A DNA stretch of 64,000 nucleotides from Basidiobolus meristosporus CBS 931.73 (taxonomy: Eukaryota > Fungi > Basidiobolomycota), in the NCBI GenBank assembly GCA_002104905.1, contig MCFE01000210.1:1-64000 (forward strand), in the 5' to 3' direction. This document shows positions 1 through 26,800 of this stretch, piece after piece. The notes under the pieces were generated by a model that made no database searches, was not told the origin of the DNA, and worked only from the letters and a program-made list of their open reading frames with translations. Every line of letters begins with the position of its first letter. Positions within the stretch are counted from its first letter, which is position 1. Made by a program: the position numbers and the translations under genes.

Positions 1-735
1 GACTACTTTTGAAATCCCCTTTGTAACTGAGTGTTTATCGGTTATCGTAGGTAAAGTTACAGTAATAGTTGGTTCGGTAACTGTCACGTTAGCTGAAGTG
101 TTCGGTTGGATGGTCACCTCTTTGGATGCTTTCTGGGTCACGGAATGCTCGTATGTCAGTGTAGGTGCAGTGATGGTCAAGGTTGGCTCAGTCACGGTAA
201 CATCAATCGACTTACGGTGTTGGATAGTCACCTTCTTGGTTTCTCCGGTCGTAATTGAGTTCGTATATGTCACTGTGGGTTTACTTACTGTAACAGTCGG
301 TTCAGTGATTGTTACATCAATCGAAGTCTCGCGTCGAATGGTCACTACGTCTGATGGTTTATCAGTCACGGAACGTTTGAGAGTCAATGTTGGCTCAGTG
401 ACCGTAATTGTTGGTTCCGTAATAGTAACTTCAACTGAAGTAACATGCTGAACGGTCACAATCTCCGAATTCTTCTTAGTAACCGATTGCTTATATGTCA
501 AAGTAGGTTCAGTAACTGTTACAGTCGGCTCAGTGATTGTTGTAGTAACTGAAGTTTCAGGTTGAATGGTCACCCAGCTGGATGGTTCGACAGTTACGGA
601 ATGTTTGTAAGTTAACGTTGGCTCAGTGACGGTAACTGTTGGTTCGGTAATAGTAACTTCAATGGAAGCTTCATGCTGAACTGTAACTTCCTTCGAAGCC
701 TCTATAGTAATAGAGTGCATAATGGTAACTGCTGG
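1..735 (-). repeat. 114-nt / 38-aa Thr-Val-Pro-Glu coding repeat (about 6 units, continues past the edge)
   Basis: Units such as EVTITEPTVTVTEPTLTYKHSVTVEPSSWVTIQPETSV and DVTITEPTVTVSKPTVTYTNSITTGETKKVTIQHRKSI. Confidence 0.85.
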
Positions 736-3700
736 CTCAGTAACTCTGCCCGTTTCCTTGGAATTAATGCTACGATGCTTGTTTGACTCAGTGCGATGGT
801 GTTCACTATAGTGAGGCTTTTCGGTCTCAATCGACTCTGACTCATGGCGTTCACGGGAGTGAGGGTTACTGGCCTTCTTAGACTCACTGTGATGGCGCTC
901 GCTTGAGTGAAGCTTCTCAGTTGCCTTAGACTCTGGCTGATGATGACCACTTTGGTGAGGCTGCTCAGTCTCCTTAGACTCTGTGTGCTGGCGCTCGCTT
1001 GAGTGAGGCTTCTCAGTTGCCTTAGACTCTGACTGATGGTGTTCACTGGAGTGAGGCTTCTCAGTCTCCTTGGACTCTGTGTGCTGGCGCTCGCTTGAGT
1101 GAGGCTTCTCAGTTGTCTTAGACTCTGACTGATGGTGTTCACTTGAGTGAGGCTTCTCAGTCTCTTTGGACTCTGTGTGCTGGCGCTCGCTTGAGTGAGG
1201 TTTCTCAGTTGCCTTAGACTCTGACTGATGGTGTTCACTTGAGTGAGGCTTCTCAGTCTCCTTGGACTCTGTGTGCTGGCGCTCGCTTGAGTGAGGCTTC
1301 TCAGTTGCCTTAGACTCTGACTGATGATGTTCACTTGAGTGAGGCTTCTCAGTCTCTTTGGACTCCGTGTGCTGGCGCTCGCTTGAGTGAGGCTTCTCAG
1401 TTGCCTTAGACTCTGACTGATGGTGTTCACTGGAGTGAGGCTTCTCAGTCTCCTTGGACTCAGTGTGATGGCGCTCGCTTGAGTGAGGCTTCTCAGTTGT
1501 CTTAGACTCTGACTGATGGTGTTCACTGGAGTGAGGCTTCTCAGTCTCTTTGGACTCAGTGTGCTGGCGCTCGCTTGAGTGAGGCTTCTCAGTCTCTTTG
1601 GACTCAGTGTGATGGCGCTCGCTTGAGTGAGGCTTCTCAGTTGTCTTAGACTCTGACTGATGGTGTTCACTTGAGTGAGGCTTCTCAGTCTCTTTGGACT
1701 CTGTGTGATGGCGCTCGCTTGAGTGAGGCTTCTCAGTTGCCTTAGACTCTGACTGATGGTGTTCACTGGAGTGAGGCTTCTCAGTCTCTTTGGACTCAGT
1801 GTGCTGGCGCTCGCTTGAGTGAGGCTTCTCAGTCTCTTTGGACTCAGTGTGATGGCGCTCGCTTGAGTGAGGCTTCTCAGTTGTCTTAGACTCTGACTGA
1901 TGGTGTTCACTTGAGTGAGGCTTCTCAGTCTCTTTGGACTCTGTGTGATGGCGCTCGCTTGAGTGAGGCTTCTCAGTTGTCTTAGACTCTGACTGATGGT
2001 GTTCACTGGAGTGAGGCTTCTCAGTTTCTTTGGACTCAGTGTGATGGCGCTCGCTTGAGTTAGGCTTCTCAGTTACCATAGACTTTGACTGATGATGACC
2101 ACTTGAGTGAGGCTTCTCGGTCTCCTTGGACTCTGTGTGCTGGCGCTCGCTTGAGTGAGGCTTCTCAGTTGCCTTAGACTCTGACTGATGGTGTTCACTT
2201 GAGTGAGGCTTCTCAGTCTCCTTGGACTCTGTGTGATGGCGCTCGCTTGAGTGAGGCTTCTCAGTTGCCTTAGACTCTGACTGATGGTGCTCACTAGAGT
2301 GAGGCTTCTCAGTCTTCTTGGACTCAGTATGATGGCGCTCGCTTGAGTGAGGCTTCACAGTTGCCTTGGACTCTGTGTGATGTCGCTCGCTTGAGTAAGG
2401 CTTTTCAGTTGCCTTAGACTCTGACCGATGTTGTTCACTAGAGTGGGGCTTCTCAGTCTCCTTAGACTCTGGGTGCTGGCGCTCGCTTGAGTGAGGCTTT
2501 TCAGCTGTCTTAGACTCTGTGTGATGGCGCTCGCTTGAGTTAGATTTCTCAGTCTCCTTGGACTCTGTGCGCTGACGCTCACTTGAGTGAGGCTTCTCAG
2601 TCTTCTTGGACTCTGTGTGATGGTATCCACTAGAGTGAGGCTTCTCAGACTCCTTGGACTCAGTGCGATGGCGCTCGCTTGAGTGAGGTTTCTCAGTTGC
2701 CTTAGACTCTGACTGATGGTGCTCACTAGAGTGAGGCTTCTCAGTCTCCCGGGACTCTTTGTGTTGGCGCTCTCTTGAGTGAGGCCTCTCAGTTGCCATA
2801 GACTCTGACTGATGATGACCACTTGTGCGAGGCTTCTGAGTCTCCTTGGACTCTTTGTGATGGCGCTCGCTTGAGTAAGGTTTCTCAGTTGCCTTGGACT
2901 CTGATTGTTGGTGTTCACTAGAGTGAAGCTTCTCTGTCTCCTTCGACTCTTTGTGATGGCGCTCGCTTGAGTGAGGCCTCTCAGTTACCTTAGACTCTGA
3001 CTGATGGTGTTCACTAGAGTGAGGCTTCTCAGTCTCCTTGGACTCCGTGTGATGGCTCTCGCTTGAGTGAGGTTTCACAGTTGCCTTAGACTCCGATTGT
3101 TGATGTTCACTAGAGTGAGACTTCTCAGTCTCCTTGGACTCTGTGTGATGGCGCTCGCTTGAGTGAGGCTTCTCAGTTGTCTTAGACTCTGACTGATGAT
3201 GACCACTCGAGTGAGGCTTCTGAGTCTCCTTGGACTCTTTGCGATGGCGCTCGCTTGAGTGAGGTTTCTCAGTTGCCTTAGACTCTGATTTTTGGTGTTC
3301 ACTAGAGTGAGGCTTCTCTGTCTCCTTGGACTCTTTGTGATGGCGCTCGCTTGAGTGAGGCTTCTCAGTTGCCTTAGACTCTGACTGATGGTGTCCACTT
3401 GAGTGAGACTTTTCAGTCTCCTTGGACCCTGTGTGATGGCGCTCGCTTGAGTGAGGCTTCTCAGCTGTCTTAGACTCTGACTGATAGTGTTCACTTGAGT
3501 GAGGCTTCTCTGTCTCCTTGGACTCTTTGTGATGGCGTTCGCTTGAGTGAGGTTTCTCAGTTGCCTTAGACTCCGATTGTTGATGTTCACTAGAGTGAGG
3601 CTTCTCTGTCTCCTTGGACTCTTTGTGATGGCGCTCGCTTGAGTGAGGCTTCTCAGTTGTCTTAGACTCTGACTGATGGTGTTCACTTGAGTGAGGCTTC

Positions 3701-6700
3701 TCAGTCTCTTTGGACTCTGTGTGCTGGCGCTCGCTTGAGTGAGGTTTCACAGTTGCCTTGGACTCTGTGTGCTGGCGCTCGCTTGAGGGAGGCTTCTCAG
3801 TTGCCTTAGACTCTGACTGATGGTGTTCACTGGAGTGAGGCTTCTCAGTCTCTTTGGACTCAGTATGATGGCGCTCGCTTGAGTGAGGCTTCACAGTTGC
3901 TTTGGACTCTGTGTGATGGCGCTCGCTTGAGTAAGGCTTTTCAGTTGCCTTAGACTCTGACCGATGTTGTTCACTAGAGTGGGGCTTCTCAGTCTCCTTA
4001 GACTCTGGGTGCTGGCGCTCGCTTGAGTGAGGCTTCACAGTTGCTTTGGACTCTGTGTGATGGCGCTCGCTTGAGTGAGGCTTTTCAGCTGTCTTAGACT
4101 CTGTGTGATGGCGCTCGCTTGTGTGAGGCTTCTCAGTTGCCTTAGACTCTGACTGATGGTGTTCACTTGAGTGAGGCTTCTCAGTCCCCTTGGACTCTTT
4201 ATGATGGCGCTCTCTTGAGTGAGGCTTCTCAGTTACCTTAGAATCTGACTGCTGGTGTTCACTAGGGTGAGGCTTCTCAGTCTCCTTAGACTCTGACTGA
4301 TGGTGTTCACTTGAGTGAGGCATCTCTGTCTCCTTGGACTTTGTGTGATGGCGTTCGCTTGAGTGAGGTTTCTCAGTTGCCTTAGACTCCGATTGTTGGT
4401 GTTCATTAGAGTGAGACTTTTCAGTCTCCTTGGACCCTGTGTGATGGCTCTCGCTTGAGTGAGGCTTCTCAGTTGCCTTAGACTCTGATTGTTGGTGTTC
4501 ACTAGAGTGAGGCTTCTCTGTCTCCTTGGACTCTTTGTGATGGCGCTCGCTTGAGTGAGGCTTTTCAGTTGCCTTAGACTCTGACTGATGTTGTTCACTT
4601 GAATGATGCTTCTCAGTCTCTTTGGACTCTGTGTGCTGGCTCTCGCTTGAGTGAAGCTTCTCAGTCTCCTGGGACTCTGTGTGATGGCGCTCGCTTGAGT
4701 GAGGTCTCTCAGTTGCCATAGACACTGACTGATGATGACCACTTGTGAGAGGCTTCTGAGTCTCCTTGGACTCTTTGTGATGGCGCTCGCTTGAATGAGG
4801 CTTCTCAGTTGCCTTGGACTCTGACTGATGGTGTCCACTTGAGTGAGACTTTTCAGTCTCCTTGGACCCTGTGTGATGGCGCTCGCTTGAGTGAGGCTTC
4901 TCAGTTGCCTTAGACTCTGACTGATGGTGTTCACTAGAGTGATGCTTCTCAGTATTTTTGGACTCTGTGTGCTGGCGTTCGCTTGAGTGAGGCTTCTCAG
5001 TTTCCTTGGTCTCTGTGTGATGGGACTTGCTTGAGTGAGGCTTCTCAGTCGCCTTAGACTCTGACTGATGGTGCTCACTAGAGCGAGGCTTCTCAGTCTC
5101 CACGGACTCTGTGTGATGGTGATCGCTTGAGTTAGGCTTCTCAGTTGCCTTAGACTCTGACTGATGGTGCTCACTAGAGTGAGGCTTCTCAGTCTTCTTG
5201 GACTCAGTGTGATGGCGCTCGCTTGAGTGAGGCTTCTCAGTTGTCTTAGACTCTGACTGATGGTGCTCGCTTGAGTGAAGCTTCTCAGTCTTCTTGGACT
5301 CAGTGTGATGGCGCTCGCTTGAGTGAGGCTTCTCAGTTGTCTTAGACTCTGACTGATGGTGCTCGCTTGAGTGAGGTTTCTCAGTTGCCTTAGACTCCGA
5401 TTGTTGGTGTTCATTAGAGTGAGACTTTTCAGTCTCCTTGGACCCTGTGTGATGGCTCTCGCTTGAGTGAGGCTTCTCAGTTGCCTTAGACTCTGATTGT
5501 TGGTGTTCACTAGAGTGAGGCTTCTCTGTCTCCTTGGACTCTTTGTGATGGCGCTCGCTTGAGTGAGGTCTCTCAGTTGCCATAGACACTGACTGATGAT
5601 GACCACTTGTGAGAGGCTTCTGAGTCTCCTTGGACTCTTTGTGATGGCGCTCGCTTGAATGAGGCTTCTCAGTTGCCTTGGACTCTGACTGATGGTGTCC
5701 ACTTGAGTGAGACTTTTCAGTCTCCTTGGACCCTGTGTGATGGCGCTCGCTTGAGTGAGGCTTCTCAGTTGCCTTAGACTCTGACTGATGGTGTTCACTA
5801 GAGTGATGCTTCTCAGTATTTTTGGACTCTGTGTGCTGGCGTTCGCTTGAGTGAGGCTTCTCAGTTTCCTTGGTCTCTGTGTGATGGGACTTGCTTGAGT
5901 GAGGCTTCTCAGTCGCCTTAGACTCTGACTGATGGTGCTCACTAGAGCGAGGCTTCTCAGTCTCCACGGACTCTGTGTGATGGTGATCGCTTGAGTTAGG
6001 CTTCTCAGTTGCCTTAGACTCTGACTGATGGTGCTCACTAGAGTGAGGCTTCTCAGTCTTCTTGGACTCAGTGTGATGGCGCTCGCTTGAGTGAGGCTTC
6101 TCAGTTGCCTTAGACTCTGACTGATGGTGCTCACTAGAGTGAGGCTTCTCAGTCTTCTTGGACTCAGTGTGATGGCGCTCGCTTGAGTGAGGCTTCTCAG
6201 TTGTCTTAGACTCTGACTGATGGTGCTCGCTTGAGTGAAGCTTCTCAGTCTTCTTGGACTCAGTGTGATGGCGCTCGCTTGAGTGAGGCTTCTCAGTTGC
6301 CTTAGACTCTGAATGATGGTGCTCACTAGAGTGAGGCTTCTCAGTCTTCTTGAACTCAGAGTGATGGTGATCGCTTGAGTTAGGCTTCTCAGTTGCCTTA
6401 GACTCTGACTGATGGTGCTCGCTTGAGTGAGGTTTCTCAATTTCCGTGGACTCAATGTGACGGCGCTCGCTTGAGTGAGGCTTTTCAGTCTCCTTGGACT
6501 CAGTGTGATGGCGCTCGCTTGAGTGAGGTTTCTCAGTTGCCTTTGACTCTGACTGATGGTGCTCACTAGAGTGAGGCTTCTCAGTCTCCTTGGACTCAGT
6601 GAGATGGTGATCGCTTGAGTGAGGCTTCTCAGTTGCCATAGACCCTGACTGATGGTGTCCACTAGAGTGAGACCTCTCGGTCTTCTTAGGCTCTCCCTGA

Positions 6701-9700
6701 TGCTGCGCGCTTGAGTGAGGCTTCTTCGTCTCCTTGGACTCGATGACATGATGCTCACTAGTGCGTGACGATATAAGCTCCTTTGACACATGGTTCGCGC
6801 TAGCGTGATGTTTTGCAGTTGATGAACCTGGTGGACCGGTAGGCATTGGTACTGTGCAGCTTGGAACGCCACTTATGATTGTACAAACATAACCAGATTC
6901 GCACAGCGATGTTTCTTCCCGTCCGTTGTTACATTTGACTATAACCGGGGATACATTTTCGGCCTTACAACCAGGTCTACAGGATCCATGTGCAGCTGGA
7001 CTAATTTTAGGCTTAATAATTCTATTTGATTCCGTACGGTAACGTTCACTAGAATAAGCTTTTCCAGTGCTCTTATCATTGGAAGTGTGACGATCACTCG
7101 AATTGGGTTGCTGAGTTTCTTTGGTAACTGGGACAAGGGCACTTGATTTAGTCTTCAGAGTGATACCTGATTTAGTATTAGATTTCAGAGTACTTGCAGA
7201 TCCAATATGATGTTGCGATGACATCTCATGATGCTCAGAGTTGTGAGACCTGTCAGTTTCCTGTGACGACTGATGATGCTCGCCGGATGAAGGCTTGTGG
7301 GTCTCCTTGGACTTCTCATGATGCTGGGTGGTGTGAGACTTTTCAGTTTCTTTTGAGGACTCGAGATGTTCGCTGGAAGAAGTTCTCTCAGTCCCCCTTG
7401 ACATTTCATGATGCTCGGTGATGTGAGACTTTTCAGTTCCCTTTGATGACTCATGATGCTCGCTGGAAGAAGCCTTATCGGTCTCCTTGGACTTCTCATG
7501 ATGCTCGGTGGTGTGAGACTTTTCAATTTCCTTGGAAGACTCATGATGCTTGCTGGAAGCAACTTTCTCGGTCTCCCGGGACTTCTCATTATGCTCGGTG
7601 GTTTGAGACTTTTTAGTTTCCGTTGACCACTCATGGTTCTTGCTGGAAGCAACCTTCTCAGTCTCTTTAGACTTCTCATGATGCTCGATGATGTGAGACT
7701 TCGCAGTTTCCGTTGACCACTCATGATGCTCGCTGGAAGAAGGCTTCTCCGTCGCCTTGGACTTCTCACGATGCTCGGTGGTGTGAGACTTTGCAGTTTC
7801 CTTGGAAGACTCATGGTGCTTGCTTGAAGAAGGCTTTCCGTGAGGCTCGCTAGAAGAAGGCTTCTCAGTCTCCGTGGACTTCTCATTATGCTCGGTGGTG
7901 TGAGACTTTGCAGTTTCCTTTGACGACCCATGGTGCTTGCTGGAAGAAGGCTTTCCGTGAGGCTCGCTAGTAGAAGGCTTCTCAGTCTCCTTGGACTTCT
8001 GATTATGCTCGGTGGTGTGAGACTTTGCAGTTTTCTTGGAAGACTCATGATGCTTGCTGGAATCAACCTTCTCGGTCTCCTTGGACTTCTCATGGCGATC
8101 GGTGGTGTGAGAATTTGCAGTTCCCTTTGACGACTCATGGTGCTTGCTGGAAGAAGGCTTTCCGTGAGGCTCGCTAGAAGAAGGCTTCTCAGTCTCCTTG
8201 GACTTCTCATTATGCTCCGTGGTGTGAGATTTTGCAGTTTCCTTGGAAGACTCATGATGCTTGCTGGAAGTAACCTTCTCGGTCTCCTTGGACTTCTCAC
8301 GATGCTCGGTGGTGTGAGACTTTGTAGTTTCCTTGGAAGACTCATGGTGCTTGCTTGAAGAAGGCTTCTCAGTCTCCTTGTACTTCTCATTATGCTCCGT
8401 GGTGTGAGATTTTGCAGTTTCCTTGGAAGACTCATGGTGCTTGCTGGAAGTTACCTTCTCGGTCTCCTTGGACTTCTCATGGTGCTCGGTGGTGTGAGAC
8501 TTTGCAGTTTCCTTGGAAGACTCATGATGCTTGCTGGAAGTAACCTTCTCGGTCTCCTTGGACTTCTCACGATGCTCGGTGGTGTGAGACTTTGTAGTTT
8601 CCTTGGAAGACTCATGGTGCTTGCTTGAAGAAGGCTTTCCGTGAGGCTCGCTAGAAGAAGGCTTCTCAGTCTCGTTGGACTTCTCATTATGCTCCGTGGT
8701 GTGAGACTTTGCAATTTCCTTTGATGAATCATGGTGCTTGCTGGAAGAAGGCTTTCCGTGAGGCTCGGTAGAAGAAGGCTTCTCAGTCTCCTTGGTCTTC
8801 TCATTATGCTCCGTGGTATGAGACTTTGCAGTTTCCTTGGAAGACTCATGATGCTTGCTGGAAGCAACCTTCTCGGTCTCCTTGGACTTCTCATGGCGAT
8901 CGGTGGTGTGAGAATTTGCAGTTCCCTTTGACGACTCATGGTGCTTGCTGGAAGAAGGCTTTCCGTGAGGCTCGCTAGAAGAAAGCTTCTCAGTCTCCTT
9001 GGACTTCTCATTATGCTCCGTGGTGTGAGATTTTGCAGTTTCCTTGGAAGACTCATGGTGCTTGCTGGAAGCAACCTTCTCGGTCTCTTCGGACTTCTCA
9101 TGATGCTCGATGGTGTGAGACTTTGCAATTTCCGTTGAAGGCTCATGATGCTTGCTGGAAGAAGGCTTTCCGTGAGGCTCGCTAGAAGAAGGCTTTCCGT
9201 GAGGCTCGCTAGAAGAAGGCTTCTCAGTCTCCTTGGTCTTCTCATTATGCTCCGTGGTGTGAGATTTTGCAGTTTCCTTGGAAGACTCATGGTGCTTGCT
9301 GGAAGTTACCTTCTCGGTCTCCTTGGACTTCTCGTGGTGCTCGGTGGTGTGAGACTTTGCAATTTCCGTTGAAGGCTCATGATGCTTGCTGGAAGAAGGC
9401 TTTCCGTGAGGCTCGCTAGAAGAAGGCTTTCCGTGAGGCTCGCTAGAAGAAGGCTTCTCAGTCTCCTTGGTCTTCTCATTATGCTCCGTGGTTTGAGACT
9501 TTGCAGTTTCCTTGGAAGACTCATGATGCTTGCTGGAAGCAACCTTCTCGGTCTCCTTGGACTTCTCATGGCGATCGGTGGTGTGAGATTTTGTAGGTTC
9601 CTTTGACGACTCATGGTGCTTGCTGGAAGTAAGCTTTCCGTGAGGCTCGCTAGAAGAAGGCTTCTCAGTCTCCTTGGACTTCTCATTATGCTCCGTGGTG

Positions 9701-12700
9701 TGAGATTTTGCAGTTTCCTTGGAAGACTCATGGTGCTTGCTGGAAGTGACCTTCTCGGTCTCCTTGGACTTCTCGTGGTGCTCGGTGGTGTGAGACTTTG
9801 CAGTTTCCTTGGAAGACTCATGATGCTTGCTGGAAGCAACCTTCTCGGTCTCCTTGGACTTCTCATGGCGATCGGTGGTGTGAGATTTTGTAGGTTCCTT
9901 TGACGACTCATGGTGCTTGCTGGAAGTAAGCTTTCCGTGAGGCTCGCTAGAAGAAGGCTTCTCAGTCTCCTTGGACTTCTCATTATGCTCCGTGGTGTGA
10001 GATTTTGCAGTTTCCTTGGAAGACTCATGGTGCTTGCTGGAAGTTACCTTCTCGGTCTCCTTGGACTTCTCGTGGTGCTCGGTGGTGTGAGACTTTGCAG
10101 TTTCCTTGGAAGACTCATGATGCTTGCTGGAAGCAACCTTCTCGGTCTCCTTGGACTTCTCATGGCGATCGGTGGTGTGAGATTTTGTAGGTTCCTTTGA
10201 CGACTCATGGTGCTTTCTGGAAGTAAGCTTTCCGTGAGGCTCGCTAGAAGAAGGCTTCTCAGTCTCCTTGGACTTCTCATTATGCTCCGTGGTGTGAGAT
10301 TTTGCAGTTTCCTTGGAAGACTCATGGTGCTTGCTGGAAGTTACCTTCTCGGTCTCCTTGGACTTCTCGTGGTGCTCGGTGGTGTGAGACTTTGCAATTT
10401 CCGTTGAAGGCTCATGATGCTTGCTGGAAGAAGGCTTTCCGTGAGGCTCGCTAGAAGAAGGCTTCGTAGTCGCCTTGGACTTCTCATGATGCTCGGTGGC
10501 GTGAGACTTTGCAGTTTTCTTGGAAGACTCATGATGCTCGCTGGAATTAACCTTCTCGGTCTCCTGGGACTTCTCATGATGCTTGGTGGTTTGAGACTTT
10601 GTAGTTTCCTTTGACGACTCATGGTGCTTGCTGGAAGAAAGCTTTCCATGAGGCTCGCTAGAAGAAGGCCTCTCAGTCTCCTTGGATTTCTCATCATGCT
10701 CGGTGGTGTGAGACTTTTGTGTTTCCTTGGAAGACTCATGATGCTTGCTGGAAGCAACCTTCTCGGTCTCCTTGGACTTCTGATCATGCTCGGTGGTATG
10801 AGACTTTGCAATTTCCGTTGAAGACTCATGATGCTCGCTGGAAGTAACCTTCTCAGTCTCCTTGGACTTCTCATGATACCCCTTGGTTTGAGACTTTACA
10901 ATCTCCTTTGACGACTCATGGTGCTTGCCGGAAGAAGGCTTTCCGTGAGGCTCGCTAGTAGAAGGCTTCTCAGTCTCCTTGGACTTCTCATGATGCTCGG
11001 TGGTGTGAGACTTTTCAATTTCCTTGGAGGACTCATGATGCTTGCTGGAAGTAGGCTTCTCCATTTCTGTTGAATATTTGTTAAATTCGCTGGAAGTAGT
11101 CTGCTCTGGCTGCTTGGACTTCTCATCGTGCTCACTTGAGTTTGGTTTCTCGGAGCTTTCATGATATTTGCTTGAGCTTGGCTTTTCATGCCGTTTGCTT
11201 GAAGGAGAAGTGTTATTCTTAGCCGTTTTGCTTATTTGGGTGGTTGGCTCCGAATTTGAATGGGTGCTCGCTGATGTTGGTGGAGGTACCGAAGATCTTG
11301 GTGGTGGAGGAGGTGGAAACGATGGCTTAGGAAGTTCACAAGATGGTATTCCATTGACCATTGCGCAAAGGTAACCATCCTGACAAGAAGATTTCTCCTG
11401 TTTTCCATTTCTACATTTGATTATTACTGGAGATTCGTTTTCGGCTTCACAGCCTGGAATGCACTTGACTTCAGGGGGCGTGCTGGAGTGAGTTTTAGCT
11501 GTTTTGCTTATTTGGGTGCCTGGCTCTGAATTTGGCTTGTTGCTAGCTGATGTTGGTGGTGGTGGTGGTGGTGGAAGCGATGGCTTAGGAAGCTCACAAG
11601 ATGGTATTCCATTGACCATTGCGCAAAGGTAACCATCCTGACAAGAAGATTTCTCCTGTTTTCCATTTTTACATTTGATTATTACTGGAGATGCGTTTTC
11701 GGCTTCACAGCCTGGAATGCACTTGACTTCAGGGGGCGTGCTGGAGTGAGTTTTAGCTGTTTTGCTTATTTGGGTGCCTGGCTCTGAATTTGGCTTGTTG
11801 CTAGCTGATGTTGGTGGTGGTGGTGGTGGTGGAAGCGATGGCTTAGGGAGCTCACAAGATGGTATTCCATTGACCATTGCGCAAAGGTAACCATCTTGGC
11901 AAGAGGATTTCTCCTGTTTTCCATTTTTACATTTGATTATTACTGGAGATGCGTTTTCGGCTTCACATCCTGGAATGCACTTGACCGCAGGCGTTGCACT
12001 CGAATGAGGCTCCTCAGTTTGACTGCGTTGCTCTTTACTTGTCTTCTTGCTCGAGGATGCTGCTGGGGATGGTGGTGGTGATTGCGTTGGCTTAAGTTGT
12101 TTACAGGATGGTACCCCCTTTACCATCGCGCACACAAATCCATCCCGACACGCAGATCTTTTCTCAACTCCATTTTCACATTTGATGATCCATGGCGATA
12201 CGTTTTCGGCTTCACAGCCTGCTACACATATGCTATTAGTGGCACTAGTAGTATGAAACTTCGCTGGCTTGGATCTTGAGCTGCTTGCTGGTGTGGATTT
12301 CGACGGTGTTTTGGGAGATACCGGCTTCATTGTTTCCTTCGGCTTATTACCGGAGTTATTTGACACTGGGTGGTGTTGGGCACTGGAATGAAGCTCTTCC
12401 GATTTCTGTTTTGGTTGCAATGTTAACTTCTCAATATACTCAGGTCAGTTCATATAATAATTACCTTTGTATTTGGCATGGTGCTTATCGAACCACTGAG
12501 TGACGGTTGCGGAGGAATGCATACAGGCGTATTTCCCCGCATTTGACAAGTATATCCTTGACCACACTCATTCATGGTTGTTACACCATTGTAGCATACT
12601 TTCATCATTCCATTTACGCATTCACTGATGCAGTTGCTGGATTTACTTGTAGAGGTGGCCGATATTTGTTTCGGACTCGAAATTTCATTGCTTTCCACGA

Positions 12701-13706
12701 ATAGTTGGCATTGCACGGTTTTGATGACACTGTTCCATTGGCGAGTATTCCAGTCGTAATTCCATCCATAGTAATCCATGCAAACCGCACCGTGTGCACA
12801 CCAAGCTGTTTCAAACCTGCCATTGACGCACTTTCGTTGCTCACCTGTCTTAAACGGATCGACACATTCTATGTTTGTTGTACATTCGTTTGTTTTTGTC
12901 ACCAAAACCTTTTTTGTGGAGACGGCTACCTTTGTTTCTTGCGTTGTGGTGTACACAACCGGCGGTAGAGTAACCACCTCTGGGACTACGCAGTTCGAGC
13001 CTATACCAATATTGCATACCTGTCCAGCTGGGCAAGGAGTTGCCCAAAATTTGCCGTCCTGGCAGAAAAAATAAACGTTGGGATATTCCGGTTTACAAGC
13101 GGTTTCACCAATAGCACAGCGACCTGTGCCGATATTGGAGGGTATGGGTGGGCATGTACACATGGCAGTGCCACTGCCTGAGTCGCAATGGCACAATTCA
13201 GTGCAGGTTTCAAGCACCTCACGGCCGTTTTGACACTCTATCACAGATCTCTTATCTGTGGAACACCTGTTTCGAAAAGTATTCGAGTTGCAAGAGCTTG
13301 TGTACGTGCGGACGTTTGTTTTCATGCTAAAAACAGTTTCGGTAGCAGTCGAAGTCGTTTTTCCTGTGCGGTAGTGTTTTACAGCCCAAGCTAAATTGCA
13401 GTATGCTTTTTCTCCGTCTGAATCGTAACATTTGTATTGCCCATTTTTGTACGGACATTTTTCAATTACCCACTTGCCGTGAATACACTTCTTGACTTCA
13501 TCCTCTGAGTGGCATGTCACCTTGTTACTATTGCAACTTCCGGTTAGTGTAGCCACCGGTTGAAGGGTGTTTTGCACGGTAAAATAGTCACTGCTGATGA
13601 TACTACCTACTTCAAGCGTACTGTCAGTAGGCACCGCCTGAGTAGAATAGGTGATGCTTAACTGATTTGTTACTAAAAGTAAGAAGAATAGTATTTTGAG
13701 CAACAT
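1..13706 (-). CDS. Giant secreted modular protein (at least 4,549 aa, 3'-truncated by the window): signal peptide, six-Cys modules, His-rich repeat arrays, Thr/Val/Pro repeats
   Basis: Exon 1 13706-12465 (414 codons, starts MLLKILFFLLLVTNQLSITYS). Phase-0 intron 12464-12406 (59 nt, GTAATT...ACAG). Exon 2 12405-1 (4,135 codons). Hand-translated without a stop at 12405-10981, 7320-6721 and 960-1. All shadow ORFs in between keep one constant frame, and the ORF track lists no terminated ORF from the in-frame ATG at 12330. Confidence 0.9.
790..6750 (-). repeat. 48-nt / 16-aa His-rich coding tandem array (about 120 units)
   Basis: Alternating EKPHSSEHHQSESKAT and EKPHSSERHHTESKET. A diagnostic variant (catagacactg) recurs at 4717 and 5581, an offset of 864 = 18 x 48. 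Confidence 0.95.
7213..11195 (-). repeat. 45-nt / 15-aa His-rich coding array with 27-nt / 9-aa inserts
   Basis: KHHESSKETAKSHTT / EHHEKSKETEKVTSS pairs with EPHGKPSSS inserts. Higher-order periods of 207 nt (4x45+27) and 297 nt (6x45+27). Confidence 0.93.
11338..11979 (-). repeat. Three 258-nt (86-aa) tandem copies of a six-Cys module plus polyproline linker
   Basis: CIPGCEAENASPVIIKCKNGKQEKSSCQDGYLCAMVNGIPSC starts at 11979, 11721 and 11463. Confidence 0.95.
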
Positions 13707-16069
13707 ATTCTCAGCATAAGCTTGGCTTTTGATGTAGCTCTGTGAGGTTTATATGCACTTTCTTCACTATTATAATCCCGTCATTTTCTACTTGAGCAAA
13801 CCAGCCAAATTTTATGGCAAAATGTTTACACTATCTAAGCGAATTATTTGACGCAAGCCTTTGCCAAGCGCGTTGGTACATTCGGGCCCATCAAGGCACA
13901 CCAGTAATTGTGGCACCGCAAGATATGCCTTTATTATAGGTGGTCGAACAGTCAGTAGCATTAGGTGATAGGACAAGCAATTCAAATATAGATTCTGGCT
14001 TTCAATAAGAGCGTCGTCTGATTTCCGTCGCTAATACTTATTTTGAGTGAATGTGCCTAATATGACTTATATGGTTGGTTCTATACGTTGGAGTAGGCCA
14101 ACGCTCAGTACGAATCTGGCCCATTTCATTTTGATCACACATATTCAGTGCGATAAGCCGTTCATCCTATGTATAGGAAGTGTGATCGGTTTAGTGGTGA
14201 GTAGAAGCAACCTAAGCCTAATTTGGAAACAAGTGGCCGTAGCAAATTACGGCATCCTAAATTAAGGAGATGAAATATTTATATATTTATATTTATTGGA
14301 ATATACCAAAATCGAAGTCTGTAGCTTCACGTATAATTTTTGTCAAGTTGTTGATAGATGCATCATTACGTGAAATATTTTAAGGTCATCTGGCCACGTG
14401 ATGTTAATGCGATGCTTTTACACAAATCACTGATTTTCTGGGAAAACCCAATAATGCTGGTAGCTATGGCACATCGAAGAGTTATTAGGCTATAATACAG
14501 CCAACAGATGACTTCACAAAGTTGGCCCACGAAAAATATGATTGTGCAATTCATTGGGGGTTATTTGTCTATGTCTCACGTTTAGGATTTGAAGGAATTA
14601 CATCCGTGCTATTACACACGGCGCTTCTTAAAAATTTGGCCGTAAATACAAAATTTATTACAATCACCCATGCAATGATGCCACATTAGCGACACTTGCA
14701 TCCCAGCATGGTGATGATGATCTAGACCTGTCTTCATTGCTCTTATATGGTTAGATTTATCTTTCATAATTAGTGGACAGTATACAAAAATCTAGCGATC
14801 AGAGGATATAGGGACGCCTGAGGCAAATATCGAGTGATATGTTGCACGACTATACCATTGTTGCGTACTTCATTGCTGAGGTTTTTACCTCAAGCAGACT
14901 CTTGGCCTGTATACAACTGTATGTACACTGTTGGCTGTCGAAATCAGAAAAGGTGTTATGATGATCCCCAATCGTCCGTATCCGTTCTAACATCAGCGTA
15001 AATGTACCAAGCACTACTGCCTACCACCCCCAAGCTAGAGAACTGTATACAAGGGTGCAATTGCCAAAAGCGGAGTGATCGATAGTGGCTAGGTCAAACT
15101 GAGTGCTCAATTCTATGTTTAACGCAAGGTATTATTGGCTGATCAATAGTTCCCCAGCATAAGAGAGAGTAATACTCTTGTGGAGCAGCGTATCGCGTGC
15201 GAAATTGTCTATATATGACCACAAAGGGTAATATCTTGATGAAAGTACTGGGCGTGGGCTTTGTGCTGAGCTGAGCTCCTTCCAAAGCTCAACGAAGTTA
15301 ACCACTAAATGACAAATGAAGTACATGGGAATAGAAGCTTGCACAGCTTAAATAGAAAATCAGGTTCATAGGACAAATTAGGACTTAGCTGTTTCCATAA
15401 TGTATTCAACATTAATGCAATTTAGAAAATGAAACAGAGCTGCTTGCATTCTGTGGTGTTTCCGAAGGAGGTGATGACTTGGCAAGAGGAAGAACTCTGC
15501 AATAAAATGGTAAATTGTATCGGAAACTCTTTCTCTAAAGCAAACAATATAAAGTCAGGGCTCTTGCAGTGGTGTCGGAAAACATGCATTTTGAGAGCTT
15601 CCAATCTACCATATTTTTGACTTTACCAGTGAGTTTCTCAACGATATTCTTGTCAAGTATAACCACTAATTGGTTCCTATTCCTATATGAATTCAAGTTC
15701 CTTGAGATAGTTCAAGGCAAAGTGCTGAAATGAACGCCAGATAAAATTGGCGTTCAGTAAGTTTATACATACTCTCAAATATTCCATGGATTTAGCCACT
15801 TAGATCTAAGCTCATAGACTTTGCAATTTTAAACAAACTGATGGGATTGGATTGTAAAATATCTCTAATACATCAAATGGCCACAAGAGGAAATTCATTT
15901 CAGGAGTCTAACAGACCCCAAGTCTGCACACATGCTCTGCATAAAATACTTTTCTTATTTCAACTGGAATGTTCTATGAGCTCAGTCACCTAGATCACAA
16001 TCCATGACCTTTAGTTTATTGGACCTGACTCCTTGTGGATATTTACAAAGCATTCATTGTCAACTTTGT

Positions 16070-17045: not shown

Positions 17046-20000
17046 TGTTGTAAAAATTTGTATTTCCACCTAAATATTCACCTAACTTAGTCACTTAGAT
17101 CATTACCTTCAAATCCTAGAAAATACTGACCAAATTCCTTGTCGGGATTTACTTAGAATATTTTCACCAAAATACCAGGTACCCAGAACATGAAAATTCT
17201 CAAAGTTGTCCAAACAGCCCCAAACTTTGTACACATGTTCTTGGGACCTTCCTTAACCTATTCTACGTGTTTGTAATGCCAAGACCAGGTAAAAGTATAA
17301 ATACCACTTTTACATTCAATAAATCATTAAGTGAAAACCACATAATCTACTTGTTCTCCCAATCACTTCCAATATCTCCAAGACTCTTACAACAGGTTAT
17401 GAGCCCCGAGCTGTCACTCTCTGCAATGTCTACTACTGCTATTACTGGAACTTTTCCCTCTGCTGAAAAGTTGGATGGATCTAACTACCAAGTGTGGAAG
17501 GTGAAGATGAAGATGCTGCTGCAAGAAAGAGGCCTTTGGGATATTGTCATGGGAGAAGAATGCCCTCCTAAAAACGTGGGAGAGGAAGCCTTAAAGTACC
17601 AGAAGAAAGAACAAAGTGCCTTTAACTGCATTTGCCTTAATGTCAAGGACAAATTGCTAATTCAATGCTCAAGAGCAAAAACGGCAAAGAATGCCTGGAA
17701 AGCATTAGAAGACACCTACCAGTCATGTTCAGCTGCCAAGAAAATGTATCTGAGAAGAAAATTCTTTACTACAAAGATGCTGCCAGGAGAAGAAATGAAA
17801 AATCTAATTAACAGAATTACCCTGCTGGTAGATGAGATGGAATCTGTGGGCGTACCAACTACTGATGAGGATGTGATAGTAACCATCCTGAATAGCCTGA
17901 CAGACGAGTTTCAGGGCCTTGTATCAGCCCTAGAGTCCAGAACTGAAGATTTGACCTTAAATTACGTATATGGAAGGCTCCTGGATGAAGAATTAAGAAA
18001 ATCAAGCGCCAATAAGAAGGAAGAAGAAAATGCTTTAATAAGCAATGATAACCAACAAAGGAGGTACCCAAGACCCTACAAAGGCAACTGCAACCTATTT
18101 TGCAACTACTGCAAAAGGAAAGGACACACATCAGACCGGTGTTTCAAAAAGAGAGATTATCAGCAAAAGAAGCCTGAATATGGAAATGCTGCAACAACTG
18201 AAGATAGACTATTCATATCTGCACTAAATATGACCACAAACAAGGATTCTCAGACGTGGTGTATTGACTCTGGAGCTTCTCAACACTTTACACACCAAAA
18301 AGAACTTTTTACCCAATATCAAGAAATTCCAATTAAGAAGGTTTTCATGGGTGACAATAGAACACTTGATGCAGTGGGAGAAGGAACTATCCAAGTAAAC
18401 CTTAGAAGCAGTGAAGGAAGCCATACACTGACCTTTAAAGAAGTACTCTATGTACCAGAAATAGCCAAGAACCTACTCTCTGTAAGCAAGGCCACAGCAG
18501 AAGGACTCAGTTTCAGTTTTGACAATTCTGGATGCAGGATCACTGATCAAAATGGTGCCCATATTGCTTCGGGCATCAGAGATCAGAATCTATACAAGTT
18601 GACTTATATTCCATCATATCTGGAAGCCAATATAAGTAACTTAAATGAAGAAACACCAATGCTTTGGCACAGGAGATTTGGACACATCAATTTTGATTAT
18701 TTGCGTAAAATGATCAAAGATCAGCTAATTTCTGGAGTGAAAATTGATCCCCCAGCTAATTTGGAGCACTGTGAAGCCTGCATATATGGGAAACAAGCCA
18801 GACAACCGTTCAAGAGCTCTGGGTTAATCAAAACTAAAAAAAAATTAGATCTAATTCACTCAGATCTGTGTGGACCTATGCAAAATTTATCCTGAGGCGG
18901 GATGAAGTATTTAATCACTTTTATTGATGATTATACAAGATACACATGGGTCTACTTCATGGAGAGAAAGGAAGAAGCTCTGTCTAAGCTCAGGGAGTTT
19001 AAAGCCATGGTGGAGAGAGAAACTGGTGAAAAAATCAAGAAAATACGCTCTGACAATGGTGGAGAATATACCTCAAAACTCTTCATCCACTTCTGCAAAA
19101 TTCATGGGATAAAGCAAGAGACTACTGTACCATACTCCCCACAGCAAAATGGAGTAGCAGAACGAGCTAACAGATCAATAATTGATATGGCAAGATCTAT
19201 GATCCATGATCAAAAATTATCCTATGATTTTTGGGCGGAATCAGTTGCCACTGCTGTATACCTTAAAAATAGGAGTTATAACAGAATACTTTGTGATTCT
19301 ACTCCATTTGAAGCATGGTATGGATACAGACCAAGTGCAGAACATCTAAGAATATTTGGGTGTACAGCATATGCCAAAAAACTGGCCGGAAATCAGTCAA
19401 AATTTGAGCCAAAAAGTGTAAAATGCATATTTTTGGGCTACTGCAATGAGAGTAAGGCATACAGACTCTACAATACCAAAGCAAAGAAGCTGATCAAGTC
19501 CAGGGATGTGTTGTTGGATGAAAGTTCAAAATTTTCACAAAAAATGACATCAGATGATGACAAAAATTTGATCTCAAGTCCACCAATTGTCAGGATTGAA
19601 TCAGAGCAAAACAATGAAAATATTTTCACTCCAGAGGACTCAACAACCGTGGTTCAGCCAGAATCAGTGCCCAGGAATATCCCAGAAGTGATCATTCCAG
19701 TATCAAATGCCCGGAGATCAAATCGGACAAGAAATAGCCCAAATTACTATATTAATGAGGGTACAAACTTAGCCTATGCCTATTCAGTCCATATTGATGA
19801 ACCCCAGACTGTAAAAGAGGCCCTAAATAGCCCTCAGACAAAGTTTTGGAGATCTGCAATGACTGAGGAATATCAGGCCCTGATGGAAAATCAAACTTGG
19901 GACTTAGTCAAATTACCAATCAACCGAAAATCAATTGGATGCAGATGGGTCTTCAAGACAAAGTACAAAGCTGATGGTACAATTGAAAGATACAAAGCAA

Positions 20001-21730
20001 GACTTGTAGCCAAAGGATACTCTCAAACAAAAGGACTTGACTATACTGAGACCTTTGCACCGGTAGCCAAGTTTAATTCCATCAGATTAATATTGGCTAT
20101 TGCAGCCAAATATAAGTTTTTTATTCATCAAATGGATGTAAAAACTGCATTTTTGAATGGAGAACTTGATGAGGACGTGTATATGGACCAGCCTGATGGG
20201 TTTGTTGACCAAGATAACCCCCATTTGGTCTGCAAGCTTAAAAAGTCACTATATGGTCTCAAACAATCACCAAGAGCCTGGAATTGCAAGATAGATTCTT
20301 ATTTGGAATCTTTCAGTTTCAAAAGGAGTAATGCTGACTATAGTATATACTATAAGCCAGATAGAGCAAATCCAGTTCTATTAGCTCTATATGTGGATGA
20401 TCTTATTATAGCCACCAATAACCTAGAAACATTGGAAGAGACTAAATCCAGCCTATCTAAGGAGTTCAAGATGTCCAATCTAGGAGAACTCAGTTACTAC
20501 TTAGGGATTAAGTTCTCCATAGACAGAAGTACCCAGACTATTACCCTAAGCCAATCCAAGTATATTCAAGATATACTAAAGAAGTACAAAATGGAAGACT
20601 GTAAACCGGCAGCTACCCCAATGGAGACAAACCTTAACTTGGTCAAAACTCAACCAAATCAATAGAGCTTGGTGCCATCTGAAAGCCCTGACTTTCCTTA
20701 TCAATCTATGGTCGGCAGTCTGATGTATATCATGCTTGGAACACGTCCAGATATCTCATATTCAGTGGGAGTTGTCAGCCAACATAATCAGAATTATGGA
20801 TCTGATCATATTGCAGCAGTTAAGCGGATTTTTAGATACCTAAAAGGAACTGCTGATATCTGCTTAAGATACACTTATAAGGATTCAGAACAGGATCTTG
20901 TGGGATACTCTGATGCTGATTGGGGACGAAATTTAGAAGACTGAAGATCCACCACAGGATACACCTTTCTTTACTGTAAAGGAGCAATTTCATGGAATTC
21001 AAGAGAGCAACCAACCGTAGCACTTTCTACTACAGAGGCAGAATATATGGCAGCCTGTGAGGCTACAAAAGAAGCAATGTGGTTAAGAAAGCTGTTTACA
21101 GATTTAGGCCTATGTCAAAAAACGCCTATTACTTTATTTCAAGATAATCAAGGATGTATACAAATAGGTAGAAATCCAACTTTTCATGCTAGAACCAAGC
21201 ACATAGATATTAGACATCATTTCATACGTGAAGCTATAGAGAGTAACTTAGTTAGATTAGTTTACTGTCCTACAGATGAAATGATTGCAGACATATTTAC
21301 CAAACCATTAGCTAGAGACAAGTTTGAATATCTTAGGTCAAAATTAGGACTAGTCAGTATGAACATTTAGCTGAGTGGGAGTGTTGTAAAAATTTGTATT
21401 TCCACCTAAATATTCACCTAACTTAGTCACTTAGATCATTACCTTCAAATCCTAGAAAATACTGACCAAATTCCTTGTCGGGATTTACTTAGAATATTTT
21501 CACCAAAATACCAGGTACCCAGAACATGAAAATTCTCAAAGTTGTCCAAACAGCCCCAAACTTTGCACACATGTTCTTGGGACCTTCCTTAACCTATTCT
21601 ACGTGTTTGTAATGCCAAGACCAGGTAAAAGTATAAATACCACTTTTACATTCAATAAATCATTAAGTGAAAACCACATAATCTACTTGTTCTCCCAATC
21701 ACTTCCAATATCTCCAAGACTCTTACAACA
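17046..21730 (+). mobile_element. Full-length Ty1/copia LTR retrotransposon (4,685 bp), recent insertion
   Basis: LTRs 17046-17394 and 21382-21730 (349 bp, TGTTG...CAACA, one mismatch found by eye), TSD GGTTT on both sides, PBS GGTTATGAGCCC, PPT GAGTGGGAG, domain order gag-PR-IN-RT-RH. Confidence 0.98.
17399..21370 (+). pseudogene. Copia gag-pol polyprotein, single frame, three in-frame stops
   Basis: Zinc knuckle CNYCKRKGHTSDRC, protease DSGAS, HHCC (WHRRFGH...CEAC), integrase DLCGP/SDNGGEY/NGVAER, RT YVDD, RNase H YSDADW/EAEY/DNQG. Stops at 18893, 20663 and 20942. Confidence 0.95.
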
Positions 21731-23875: not shown

Positions 23876-26800
23876 TGTTGTTAAAATTTGTAATTCCACC
23901 TAAATATTCACCTGACTTAGTCACTTAGATCATTACCTTCAAATACTAGAGAATACTGACCAAGTTCCTTGTTGGGATTTACTTAGAATATTTACCCAGA
24001 ACATGAAAATTCTCAAAGTTGTCCAAAAAGCCCCAAACTTTGTACACATGTTCTTGGGACCTCCCTCAACCTATTCTATGTGCTTGTTATGCCAAGACCA
24101 GGTAAAAGTATAAATACTACTTTTACATTCACCACATCATTAGGTGAAAGCCACTTAATCTACTTGTTCTCCCAATCACTTCCAATATCTCCAAGACTCT
24201 TACAACAGGTTATGAGCCCCAAGCAGTCACTCTTTGCAATGTCTACTACTGCTATTACTGGAATCTCTTCCTCTGCTGAAAAGTTGGATGGATCTAACTA
24301 CCAAGTGTGGAAGGAGAAGATGAAGATGCTGTTACAGGAAGAGGCCTTTGGGATATTGTCATGGGAGAAGAATGCCCTCCTAAAAACGTGGGAGAGGCAG
24401 CCTTAAAGTACCAGAAGAAAGAACAAAGTGCCTTTAACTGCATTTGCCTTAATGTTAAGGACAAATTGCTAATTCAATGCTCAAGAGCAAATCGGCAATG
24501 AATGCCTGGAAAGCATTAGAAGACACCTACCAGTCATGTTCAGCTGCCAAGAAGATGTATCTGAGACAAAAATTCTTTACTACAAAGATGCTGCCAGGAG
24601 AAGAAATGAAAAATCTAATTAACAGAATTACCCTGCTGGTAGATGAGATGGAATCTGTGGGCGTACCAACTACTGATGAGGATGTGATAGTAACCATCCT
24701 GAATAGCCTGACAGACGAGTTTCAGGGCCTTGTATCAGCCCTAGAGTCCAGAACTGAAGACTTTATCTTAAATTGCGTATATAGAAGGCTCCTGGATGAA
24801 GAATTAAAAAAATCAAGCGCCAATAAGAAGGAAGAAGAAAATGCTTTAATAAGCAATGATAACCAACAAAGGAGGTACCCAAAACCCTACAAAGGCAACA
24901 GCAACCTATTTTGCAACTACTGCAAAAGGAAAGGACATACTTCAGACTGGTGTCTCAAAAAGAGAGATTATCAGCAAAAGAAGCCTGAATATGGAAATGC
25001 TGCAACAACTGAAGATAGACTATTCATATCTGCACTAAATAGGACCACAAACAAGGATTCTCAGGCGTGGTATATTGACTCTGGAGCTTCTCAACACTTT
25101 ACACACCAAAAAGAACTTTTTACCCAATATCAAGAAATTCCAATTAAGAAGGTTTTTATGGGTGACAATAGAACACTTGATGCAGTGGGAGAAGGAACTA
25201 TCCAAGTAAACCTTAGAAGCACTGAAGGAAACCATACACTGACCTTTAAAGAAGTACTCTATGTACCAGAAATAGCCAAGAACCTACTCTCTGTAAGCAA
25301 GGCCACAGCAGAAGGACTCAGTTTCAGTTTTGACAATTCTGGATGCAGGATCACTGATCAAAATGGTGTCCATATTGCTTTGGGCATCAGAGATCAGAAT
25401 CTACACAAGTTGACTTATATTCCATCATACTTGGAAGCCAATATAAGTAACTTAAATGAAGAAACACCAATGCTTTGGCACAGGAGATTTGGACACATCA
25501 ATTTTGATTATTTGCGTAAAATGATCAAAGATCAGCTAATTTCTGGAGTGAAAATTGATCCCCCAGCTAATTTGGAGCACTGTGAAGCCTGCATATATGG
25601 TAAACAAGCCCGACAACTGTTCAAGAGCTCTGGGTTAATCAAAACTAAGAAAAAATTAGATCTAATTCACTCAGGTTTGTGTGGACCTATGCAAAATTTA
25701 TCCTTAGGTGGGATGAAGTATTTAATCACTTTTATTGATGATTATACAAGATACACATGGGTCTACTTCATGGAGAGAAAGGAAGAAGCTCTGTCTAAGC
25801 TCAGGGAGTTTAAAGCCATGGTGGAGAGAGAAACTGGTGAAAAAATCAAGAAAATACGCTCTGACAATGGTGGAGAATATACCTCAAAACTCTTCATCCA
25901 CTTCTGCAAAATTCATGGGATAAAGCAAGAGACTACTGTACCATACTCCCCACAGCAAAATAAAGTAGCAGAACAAGCTAACAGATCAATAATTGATATG
26001 GTAAGATCCATGATCCATGATCAAAATTATCCTATGATTTTTGAGCGGAATCAGTTGCCACTGCTGTATACCTTAAAAATAGGAGTTATAACAGAATACT
26101 TTGTGATTCTACTCCATTTGAAGCATGGTATGGATACAGACCAAGTGCAGAACATCTAAGAATATTTGGGTGCCCAGCATATGCCAAAAAACTGGCCGGA
26201 AATCAGTCAAAATTTGAGCCAAAAAGTGTAAAATGCATATTTTTGGGCTACTGCAATGAGAGTAAGGCATACAGACTCTACAATACCAAAGCAAAGAAGC
26301 TTATCAAGTCCAGGGATGTGTTGTTTGATGAAAGTTCAAAATTTTCATAAAAAATGACATCAGATGATGACAAAAATTTGATCTCAAGTCCACCAATTGT
26401 CAGGATTGAATCAGAGAAAAACAATGAAAATTTTTTCACTCCAGAGGACTCTACAACCGTGGTTCAGCCAGAATCAGTGCCCAGGAATATCCCAGAAGTG
26501 ATCATTCCAGTATCAAATGCCCGGAGATCCAATCGGACAAGAAATAGCCCAAATTACTATATCAATGAGGGTACAAACTTAGCCTATGCCTATTCAGTCC
26601 ATATTGATGAACCCCAGACTGTAAAAGAGGCCCTAAATAGCCCTCAGACAAAGTTTTGGAGATCTGCAATGACTGAGGAATATCAGGCCCTGATGGAAAT
26701 CAAACTTGGGACTTAGTCAAATTACCAATCAACCAAAAATCAATTGGATGCAGATGGGTCTTCAAGACAAAATACAAGGCTGATGGCACAATTGAAAGAT

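Follow-up and report, generated by a model that had tools for sequence, protein, structure and literature searches.

Carbohydrate-binding modules of family CBM19, known from fungal chitinases (Rhizopus chitinases 1 and 2, yeast Cts1) and from stand-alone CBM19 proteins of Zoopagomycota, are domains of approximately 45 amino acids (aa) with six cysteines. Secreted proteins with several six-Cys chitin-binding modules separated by low-complexity Ser/Thr-rich spacers include the insect peritrophins and intestinal mucins and CPG-1/2 and CBD-1 of C. elegans, which carry CBM14 modules and are thought to cross-link chitin fibrils, and the same multi-module chitin-binding layout with low-complexity spacers occurs in the Jacob lectins of Entamoeba. 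BAD1/WI-1 of Blastomyces is a secreted tandem-repeat adhesin of ~120 kDa that re-attaches non-covalently to wall chitin by a Cys-rich domain and binds divalent cations; its repeats contain Cys and Trp and are not His-rich. Secreted His-rich tandem-repeat proteins are known from squid beak, Nereis jaw, and mussel byssus; these are Gly/Ala/His-rich with few charged residues, and the partner proteins of the beak bind chitin. QID74, made of tandem Cys-rich modules (13 repeats of 59 aa), is protective at the chitin layer and binds chitinase (PMC13170347). Here we describe a gene at the very start of contig MCFE01000210.1 of Basidiobolus meristosporus CBS 931.73 (GenBank record of 127,776 nucleotides (nt)), of which positions 1–64,000 were analyzed and are referred to as the window. 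The gene lies on the minus strand, lacks its 3′ end, and very probably forms a single unit of two exons; its predicted product is a giant modular protein, secreted and at least 4,549 aa long, that combines Cys modules of a CBM19-like chitin-binding type with long His-rich repeat arrays.

An initial annotation made from the letters of the window had proposed that a 59-nt intron at 12464–12406 joins a 418-aa Cys-rich open reading frame (ORF) to a second exon that stays open to the window edge. Full translation bears this out. When the three minus-strand frames were translated, one was free of stops from 12444 to base 1 (4,148 codons), and the spliced product has a mass of 509 kDa or more and comprises 4,549 aa with no stops, 62 Cys, and 539 His (11.8%; the earlier estimate was more than 500). 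The ORF listing leaves out ORFs that run off the source, so that the long frame is hidden there and the minus strand is represented by the 418-aa ORF (12450–13706) and a string of ORFs in another frame. Base 1 of the window is base 1 of the contig, as the annotated Iml1 and PI-PLC-like genes have identical record and window coordinates; the ORF is therefore truncated by the assembly and not by the window, and the 3′ end of the gene and the C-terminus of its product are absent from the assembly here. The fungal origin that had been supposed agrees with the neighboring 1,363-aa ORF, which matches the Iml1 protein of B. meristosporus CBS 931.73 at 100% identity. The architecture given in the initial annotation (signal peptide, five, four, and one Cys modules, arrays A and B, Thr/Val repeats) was re-derived from the translation, with the modules of exon 2 designated type B:

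12465–13706, minus strand: exon 1, 414 codons, ATG at 13706, with a signal-peptide-like N-terminus and five Cys modules
13644–13706, minus strand: predicted signal peptide, approximately aa 1–21, MLLKILFFLLLVTNQLSITYS, read from the sequence, cleavage site set by eye
12519–13535, minus strand: five N-terminal Cys modules, aa 58–396, modules 1 and 3 matching Pfam CBM_19
12406–12464, minus strand: predicted 59-nt intron, GTAATT...TTAAC...CAG, canonical GT..AG and in frame
1–12405, minus strand: exon 2, 4,135 codons, open to base 1 by frame translation
11338–12228, minus strand: four type-B six-Cys modules, aa 474–770, with polyproline/Ser linkers between them
7168–11157, minus strand: His array A, approximately aa 830–2160, 30-aa units SSKHHESSKETAKSHTTEHHEKSKETEKVT with 9-aa SSEPHGKPS inserts
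6856–6981, minus strand: single type-B Cys module between the arrays, aa 2223–2264
817–6720, minus strand: His array B, aa 2310–4277, 123 units of 16 aa
1–750, minus strand: Thr/Val-rich repeats with a 38-aa period (...VTITEPTVTVTEPTLTYKHSVT...), about seven units, cut by the contig end

The 418-aa ORF ends in MPNTK-VIII-stop, and the donor GT at 12464–12463 (GTAATT) comes right after its ...AAG. Fifty-nine bases past the start of GTAATT the sequence reads ...TTAACATTGCAACCAAAACAG, followed by AAA TCG GAA GAG in the long frame; the acceptor CAG ends at 12406, with TTAAC ~17 nt upstream of the AG. Removal of 12464–12406 joins both frames without a stop, and a 59-nt intron is normal for this genome, since the annotated Iml1 introns on the same contig measure 77, 57, and 64 nt. 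The proposed pair is the most canonical one and leaves Cys module 5 intact; the exact junction is a plausible prediction. A single frameshift in place of the intron is ruled out because the stop of the first frame (12452–12450) lies upstream of the opening of the second (12444), and the frames share no open overlap.

At present, the joining of the exons is best supported by comparison with three Basidiobolus homologues described below, which have the same N-terminal domain and a His-rich tail in one uninterrupted ORF (aa 1–630 in P0001, 1–754 in P0002, and 1–1129 in P0004). In exon 2, KPVSPKTPSK... follows the first Met and there is no separate signal peptide, yet all six Cys are kept in each of the five modules; because disulfide modules require the secretory route, exon 2 would need exon 1. 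Codon positions within the repeats point the same way. Variability among the units of array B is 0.06–0.11 at codon positions 1 and 2 and 0.21–0.24 at position 3, and the corresponding values for positions 1, 2, and 3 of array A are 0.074, 0.061, and 0.118. This third-position excess, two- to threefold in array B, indicates coding constraint at the protein level in the long frame. Codon choice is strongly skewed in the giant gene (GAG 0.79, AAG 0.80, CCT 0.65) compared with the neighboring Iml1 and S9 peptidase genes (GAG and AAG 0.37–0.51, CCT 0.20–0.33), and GC content is ~50% in 1–12405 vs. 39% in the flanks; the codon skew may be a legacy of the amplified unit or a sign of high expression.

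The protein contains ten six-Cys modules in total, five from each exon. Those of exon 1 span aa 58–103, 139–185 (with eight Cys), 197–239, 275–333, and 359–396. The four clustered modules of exon 2 share an identical spacing, C-x3-C-x11-C-x9-C-x5-C-x8-C, and three of them lie within 258-nt repeats that are 97% identical. The supposition that the Cys modules are of chitin-binding type gains support from family and fold comparisons, in which 17 modules from the window protein and its relatives were used that all align on one six-Cys framework. The Pfam family CBM_19 (PF03427) matches exon 1 with 21.3 bits (cut-off 20.1) and four of the 17 single modules with a best E of 5.3e-6, marginal scores that are confined to N-terminal-type modules. 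Comparison of the type-B modules with the CBM19-matching ones by hhalign gave 80% probability and an E of 1.4e-5 over 31 columns. An AlphaFold model of one type-B module, based on the 17-module alignment, is confident, with a predicted local distance difference test score (pLDDT) of 87, and comprises two beta-hairpins. Its two best matches among the clusters of the AlphaFold Database (AFDB) are CBM19 domain-containing proteins (template modeling (TM) scores of 0.82 and 0.80, root-mean-square deviations of 1.6 and 1.3, E of 7e-4 and 1e-3), and six further CBM19 domain-containing proteins are found in the top 21 AFDB matches, together with chitin-binding type-2 and type-4 proteins. Among Swiss-Prot models, it matches chitinases 1 and 2 of Rhizopus in their CBM19 region (359–404, TM 0.57) and many CBM14 domains, namely those of chitotriosidase, acidic chitinase, obstructor-E, CPG-2, and peritrophin-48. 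The best solved structures by VIA-align are the CBM14 of chitotriosidase (Z 4.5), chitin-bound Avr4 (Z 4.1), mite chitin-binding allergens, and tachycitin; these Z-scores are low, as a module of only 50 residues would lead one to expect, yet they form a coherent set. The Foldseek search of the 50-aa module against the PDB gave no significant E-values and was used only for its enrichment in chitin-binding domains. On the sequence level, CBM_14 (PF01607) did not reach its Pfam cut-off (best E 0.013, 16.1 bits vs. 22.1) and touched three of the 17 single modules at an E of at least 0.04, under the cut-off, so that the likeness to CBM14 is one of fold only (Z 4.5, TM 0.57–0.67). By Pfam, profile–profile comparison, and model, the modules are thus best described as predicted CBM19-like modules of chitin-binding type.

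The cysteine-rich eggshell membrane protein CREMP (PDB 9pgb) was considered as a homologue and rejected. Its four modules share the C-terminal hairpin motif C-x2-G-x2-C-x4-G-x-P-x-C of the modules described here (E 2e-8 overall) over 20 residues per module, and the Foldseek TM is 0.28; the likeness is that of a common small disulfide hairpin and is no evidence of kinship.

Unlike the CBM19 chitinases, the giant protein has no catalytic domain, carries ten modules per chain and ~3,300 aa of His-rich repeats, and its type-B modules are too diverged for a direct Pfam match. It resembles the peritrophins and mucins in being a predicted secreted protein in which several six-Cys modules alternate with low-complexity spacers, and CBM14 is among the best fold matches; it differs from them and from the Jacob lectins in its module family, its far longer His/Glu/Lys-rich polyampholyte spacers, and its fungal host. 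BAD1 offers a fungal parallel, as a secreted many-repeat protein attached to chitin (an attachment predicted here for the giant protein), and we know of no sequence relation between the two. QID74 has no His arrays and is likened to the giant protein by layout and possible role. By analogy, then, the giant protein resembles peritrophins, mucins, Jacob lectins, and BAD1 in its apparent layout and does not appear to be a member of those families. The order of signal peptide, N-terminal binding-type region, and long Ser/Thr-rich repeat stalk is also that of glycosylphosphatidylinositol (GPI)-anchored adhesins of the Als/Flo/Epa type; Pfam gave no match of the giant protein to an adhesin domain family.

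Relatives of the protein were sought from its non-repeat end, as had been suggested. An exhaustive phmmer search with exon 1 against 1.84 billion representatives returned seven proteins, of which the relevant ones are all from Basidiobolus:

P0001: B. ranarum KAK9759877, 635 aa, 38% identical, E 3e-67
P0002: B. meristosporus ORX89337, a paralogue recorded as ‘partial’, 754 aa, E 2e-23
P0004: B. ranarum KAK9761903, 1,130 aa, E 9e-12
P0003 and P0006: two short proteins of B. meristosporus, 454 and 195 aa, E 2.7e-12 and 2.2e-4

P0003 and P0006 are named ‘CBM19 domain-containing’ in UniProt, and the Pfam search of the homologues returned no match. The same layout is found in P0001, P0002, and P0004, with a signal peptide and N-terminal modules followed by polyPro-linked type-B modules and Ser/Glu/Lys/His repeats; signal-like hydrophobic N-termini recur in the homologues, and every Cys of exon 1 is invariant in the alignment with P0001–P0004. 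The EKPHSSE motif of the repeats is also present in P0004, despite a repeat period of 40 aa vs. 16 aa. P0002 runs off the end of its contig and the B. ranarum genes lie on contigs of 2.9 and 7.1 kb; genes of this family regularly break assemblies. The exact look-ups of the unspliced 418-aa product and of exon 2 from its first Met were not on record, and the gene seems absent from the public protein set, judging by its failure to surface there. The word-index queries used exon 1 and residues 1–400 of exon 2, and relatives surfaced only by exhaustive phmmer. In the literature, nothing relevant turned up on Basidiobolus in connection with CBM19 or histidine-rich proteins, or on CBM19 in connection with histidine-rich sequence. 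Searches of proteins, structures, and the literature gave no characterized orthologue, in line with the earlier remark that no characterized fungal protein is known to be like it. What is new lies in its His-polyampholyte arrays, its size, and its N-terminal domain, which is restricted to the genus; the combination of multiple CBMs with spacers is of a known kind.

Two further observations concern exon 1 in sequencing data. Short-read contigs over 12539–12846 and 13463–13616 are broken into pieces of 34–128 nt with a summed depth of up to 2–3 times that of the flanks, which suggests short stretches of exon 1 common to paralogues elsewhere in the genome. A run with a different organism label (X3, 2013, same study) contains, at low depth, a contig of 153 nt that matches part of Cys module 5 exactly (12525–12676); it could stem from the same species labelled differently, from a close relative, or from carry-over.

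The arrays are composed of 21–22% Ser, 18–19% Glu, 13–17% Lys, 14–17% His, 9–13% Thr, and ~2% Gly. The units of array B follow the consensus PHSSE[HR]H[HQ][ST]ESK[EA]TEK in perfect register without indels. The protein contains 146 His-His (HH) pairs, mostly beside Glu, and 253 S-x-E triplets. From simple pKa arithmetic with the His pKa set at 6.3, the computed net charge of the mature chain is ~−30 at pH 8, ~0 at pH 7.3, ~+330 at pH 6, and ~+590 at pH 5. In the arrays there was no Pfam match, no HExxH motif, and no known metal-binding motif or domain, and the ESM Atlas look-alikes of array B (≤0.81) were generic repeat proteins, rejected as uninformative. By composition, the arrays appear to be of a disordered type, highly charged polyampholytes with a large pH-titratable part, rather like a mucin-type spacer. 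The initial annotation had drawn an analogy to the His-rich proteins of squid beak, Nereis jaw, and byssus. This analogy extends to predicted secretion and His-rich tandem repeats and fails on composition, as the arrays are highly charged and dominated by Ser, Glu, and Lys, with little Gly. Metal cross-linking, coacervation, and a part in spore adhesion are conjectural for the giant protein. For the Thr/Val-rich end, alternating beta-branched residues suggest beta strands. Pfam PF21930 (‘xxxxx_C, beta helical trimerization domain’) matches this end with 35 bits (cut-off 27, E 1.4e-8), in a single stretch (aa 12–53 of the last 250) among approximately seven near-identical units, and the match may be compositional; the ESM Atlas look-alikes of the region (≤0.86) were again generic repeat proteins and uninformative.

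We hold with moderate confidence that the locus, as one two-exon gene, encodes a secreted protein of >0.5 MDa that resides in the chitin-containing wall or extracellular matrix. The signal peptide would route the protein into the secretory pathway, where disulfides would form in the six-Cys modules. Nine N-terminal CBM19-like modules and the one between the arrays would then bind chitin multivalently and so hold the chain at the wall by non-covalent contacts; they may also bridge fibrils. The two Ser/Glu/Lys/His/Thr arrays (~3,300 aa) would be disordered and are probably O-glycosylated, forming an extended hydrophilic brush or spacer that would change its charge and swelling with pH through its ~540 His, and Zn, Cu, or Ni could be bound by the Glu-flanked HH pairs. 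Toward the C-terminus, the Thr/Val repeats, presumably beta-strand-prone, would form a probably stiffer, self-associating or adhesive segment.

Several points weigh against this reading. The type-B modules have no direct Pfam match and the CBM_19 scores of the others are marginal; chitin binding is argued from family and fold resemblance, and the model of the whole N-terminal region is poor (pLDDT 52) and was left out of the fold search. Disorder, glycosylation, pH switching, and metal binding of the arrays are read from composition. The C-terminus, which may carry a GPI signal, a further CBM, or no anchor, lies past the contig end. As for the gene itself, no RNA run is listed for 12100–14100 and splicing is predicted from the sequence. 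The six sequencing runs found are DNA, and those covering the locus read through the intron without a break and do not differ from the window. There are 39 in-frame, stop-free GT..AG pairs in all, i.e., 38 besides the proposed one. Exon 1 and the start of exon 2 occur in no public protein by a word-index search of 5.8 billion sequences, phmmer, or exact look-ups. Lastly, the relative P0003 (454 aa) consists of the N-terminal domain only.

The repeat arrays themselves invite a different emphasis: the protein would serve chiefly to handle metals, as a reservoir or sink of Zn, Cu, or Ni tethered to the wall and used for scavenging or detoxification in gut and dung, with the His arrays as the active part and the CBM19 modules as anchor only. 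The abundance of His, the regular flanking of the HH pairs by Glu, and the conservation of the repeat motif between species would suit such a role. We consider it rather unlikely, as no known metal-binding motif or domain, HExxH, or Pfam match was found in the arrays, and their equal Lys and Glu and 30% Ser/Thr look more like a spacer.

Alternatively, the multivalent modules may coat the fungus's own chitin against chitinases of the host, of gut microbes, or of the fungus itself, or against immune recognition, with the arrays as a steric barrier, comparable to Avr4 and QID74. Animal guts are a habitat of Basidiobolus, and the predicted module fold resembles that of chitin-bound Avr4. QID74, a tandem Cys-module wall protein of Trichoderma, guards the wall from chitinase (PMC13170347), but it binds chitinase rather than chitin. 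Such a shield would also leave the need for 3,300 residues of His-rich repeats unexplained, and we regard it as improbable.

The most basic challenge is that the locus is not one gene, and that a 418-aa secreted Cys-rich protein ending at the TGA at 12450 is followed by a separate, unexpressed or decaying 12.4-kb repeat stretch, kept open through recent repeat amplification. An unspliced 418-aa product is not absurd, as P0003 exists as a short family member; no RNA run is listed for the locus and no public gene model was found. Some repeats are 97–98% identical, so that openness is partly inherited from the unit, and the other minus-strand frame also has ORFs of up to 879 aa. The long frame, however, stays open through three different repeat types and through unique linkers, its five modules are intact in their six Cys, and variation is in excess at third positions. 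Both parts are held in one ORF in three homologues, and exon 2 lacks its own signal peptide. Together these observations make two separate elements quite unlikely.

That the size is partly an assembly artefact, with arrays expanded, collapsed, or chimeric with paralogues and hence with unreliable array lengths and part order, is very unlikely. In its favor, the contig ends inside the gene, likewise that of the paralogue P0002, the B. ranarum homologues lie on short contigs, and short-read contigs break repeatedly even in exon 1, but the 123 units of array B, free of indels and with graded divergence, fit a real array better than a collapsed one, and there is no frame break over 12.4 kb.

The remainder of the window contains further genes, two of which fix the position of the giant gene on the contig:

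46050–50894, minus strand: Iml1 gene, GenBank annotation
35572–37062: PI-PLC-like gene, GenBank annotation

Iml1 has a second copy in the B. meristosporus genome (P0009, 73% identity), which fits large-scale duplication in this species. A SET-domain gene (242 aa, PF00856) is called in GenBank at 51965–52943. Upstream of the giant gene, at a distance of 3.5–12 kb, lie two plus-strand ORF sets of copia-type long terminal repeat (LTR) retroelements (gag, integrase, RVT_2), one at 17267–20665, divided between two ORFs, and one at 24477–26159; an exact look-up of a copia ORF was not on record. GenBank calls no gene at 37657–42664, where three consecutive plus-strand ORFs of 260, 643, and 775 aa may represent a second unannotated gene; the 775-aa ORF carries an Mcp5-type PH domain (E 2.7e-31).

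If expressed, the giant protein would rank with the largest secreted proteins of fungi; for its His-rich arrays we found no described relative. The predicted product couples a known wall-binding module, CBM19, to an enormous pH-titratable and possibly metal-binding repeat region. Because the gene seems absent from public protein sets and every member of the family that was found is cut by a contig end, the family is largely invisible to comparative genomics. In a bolder and doubtful extension of the wall-resident reading, the wall or spore coat of Basidiobolus might consist in part of an undescribed class of chitin-tethered, half-megadalton histidine polyampholytes that switch charge, swelling, and metal cross-linking over the pH of gut passage (~5–7.5) and act as a responsive hydrogel for protection or adhesion; they would be the products of an expanded giant-gene family missed by standard annotation and short-read assembly. 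The repeat peptides are of possible interest for stimulus-responsive protein materials. For the biology of Basidiobolus, the gene, if expressed, would point to an unstudied wall or matrix component of a gut-associated, occasionally pathogenic, early-diverging fungus.

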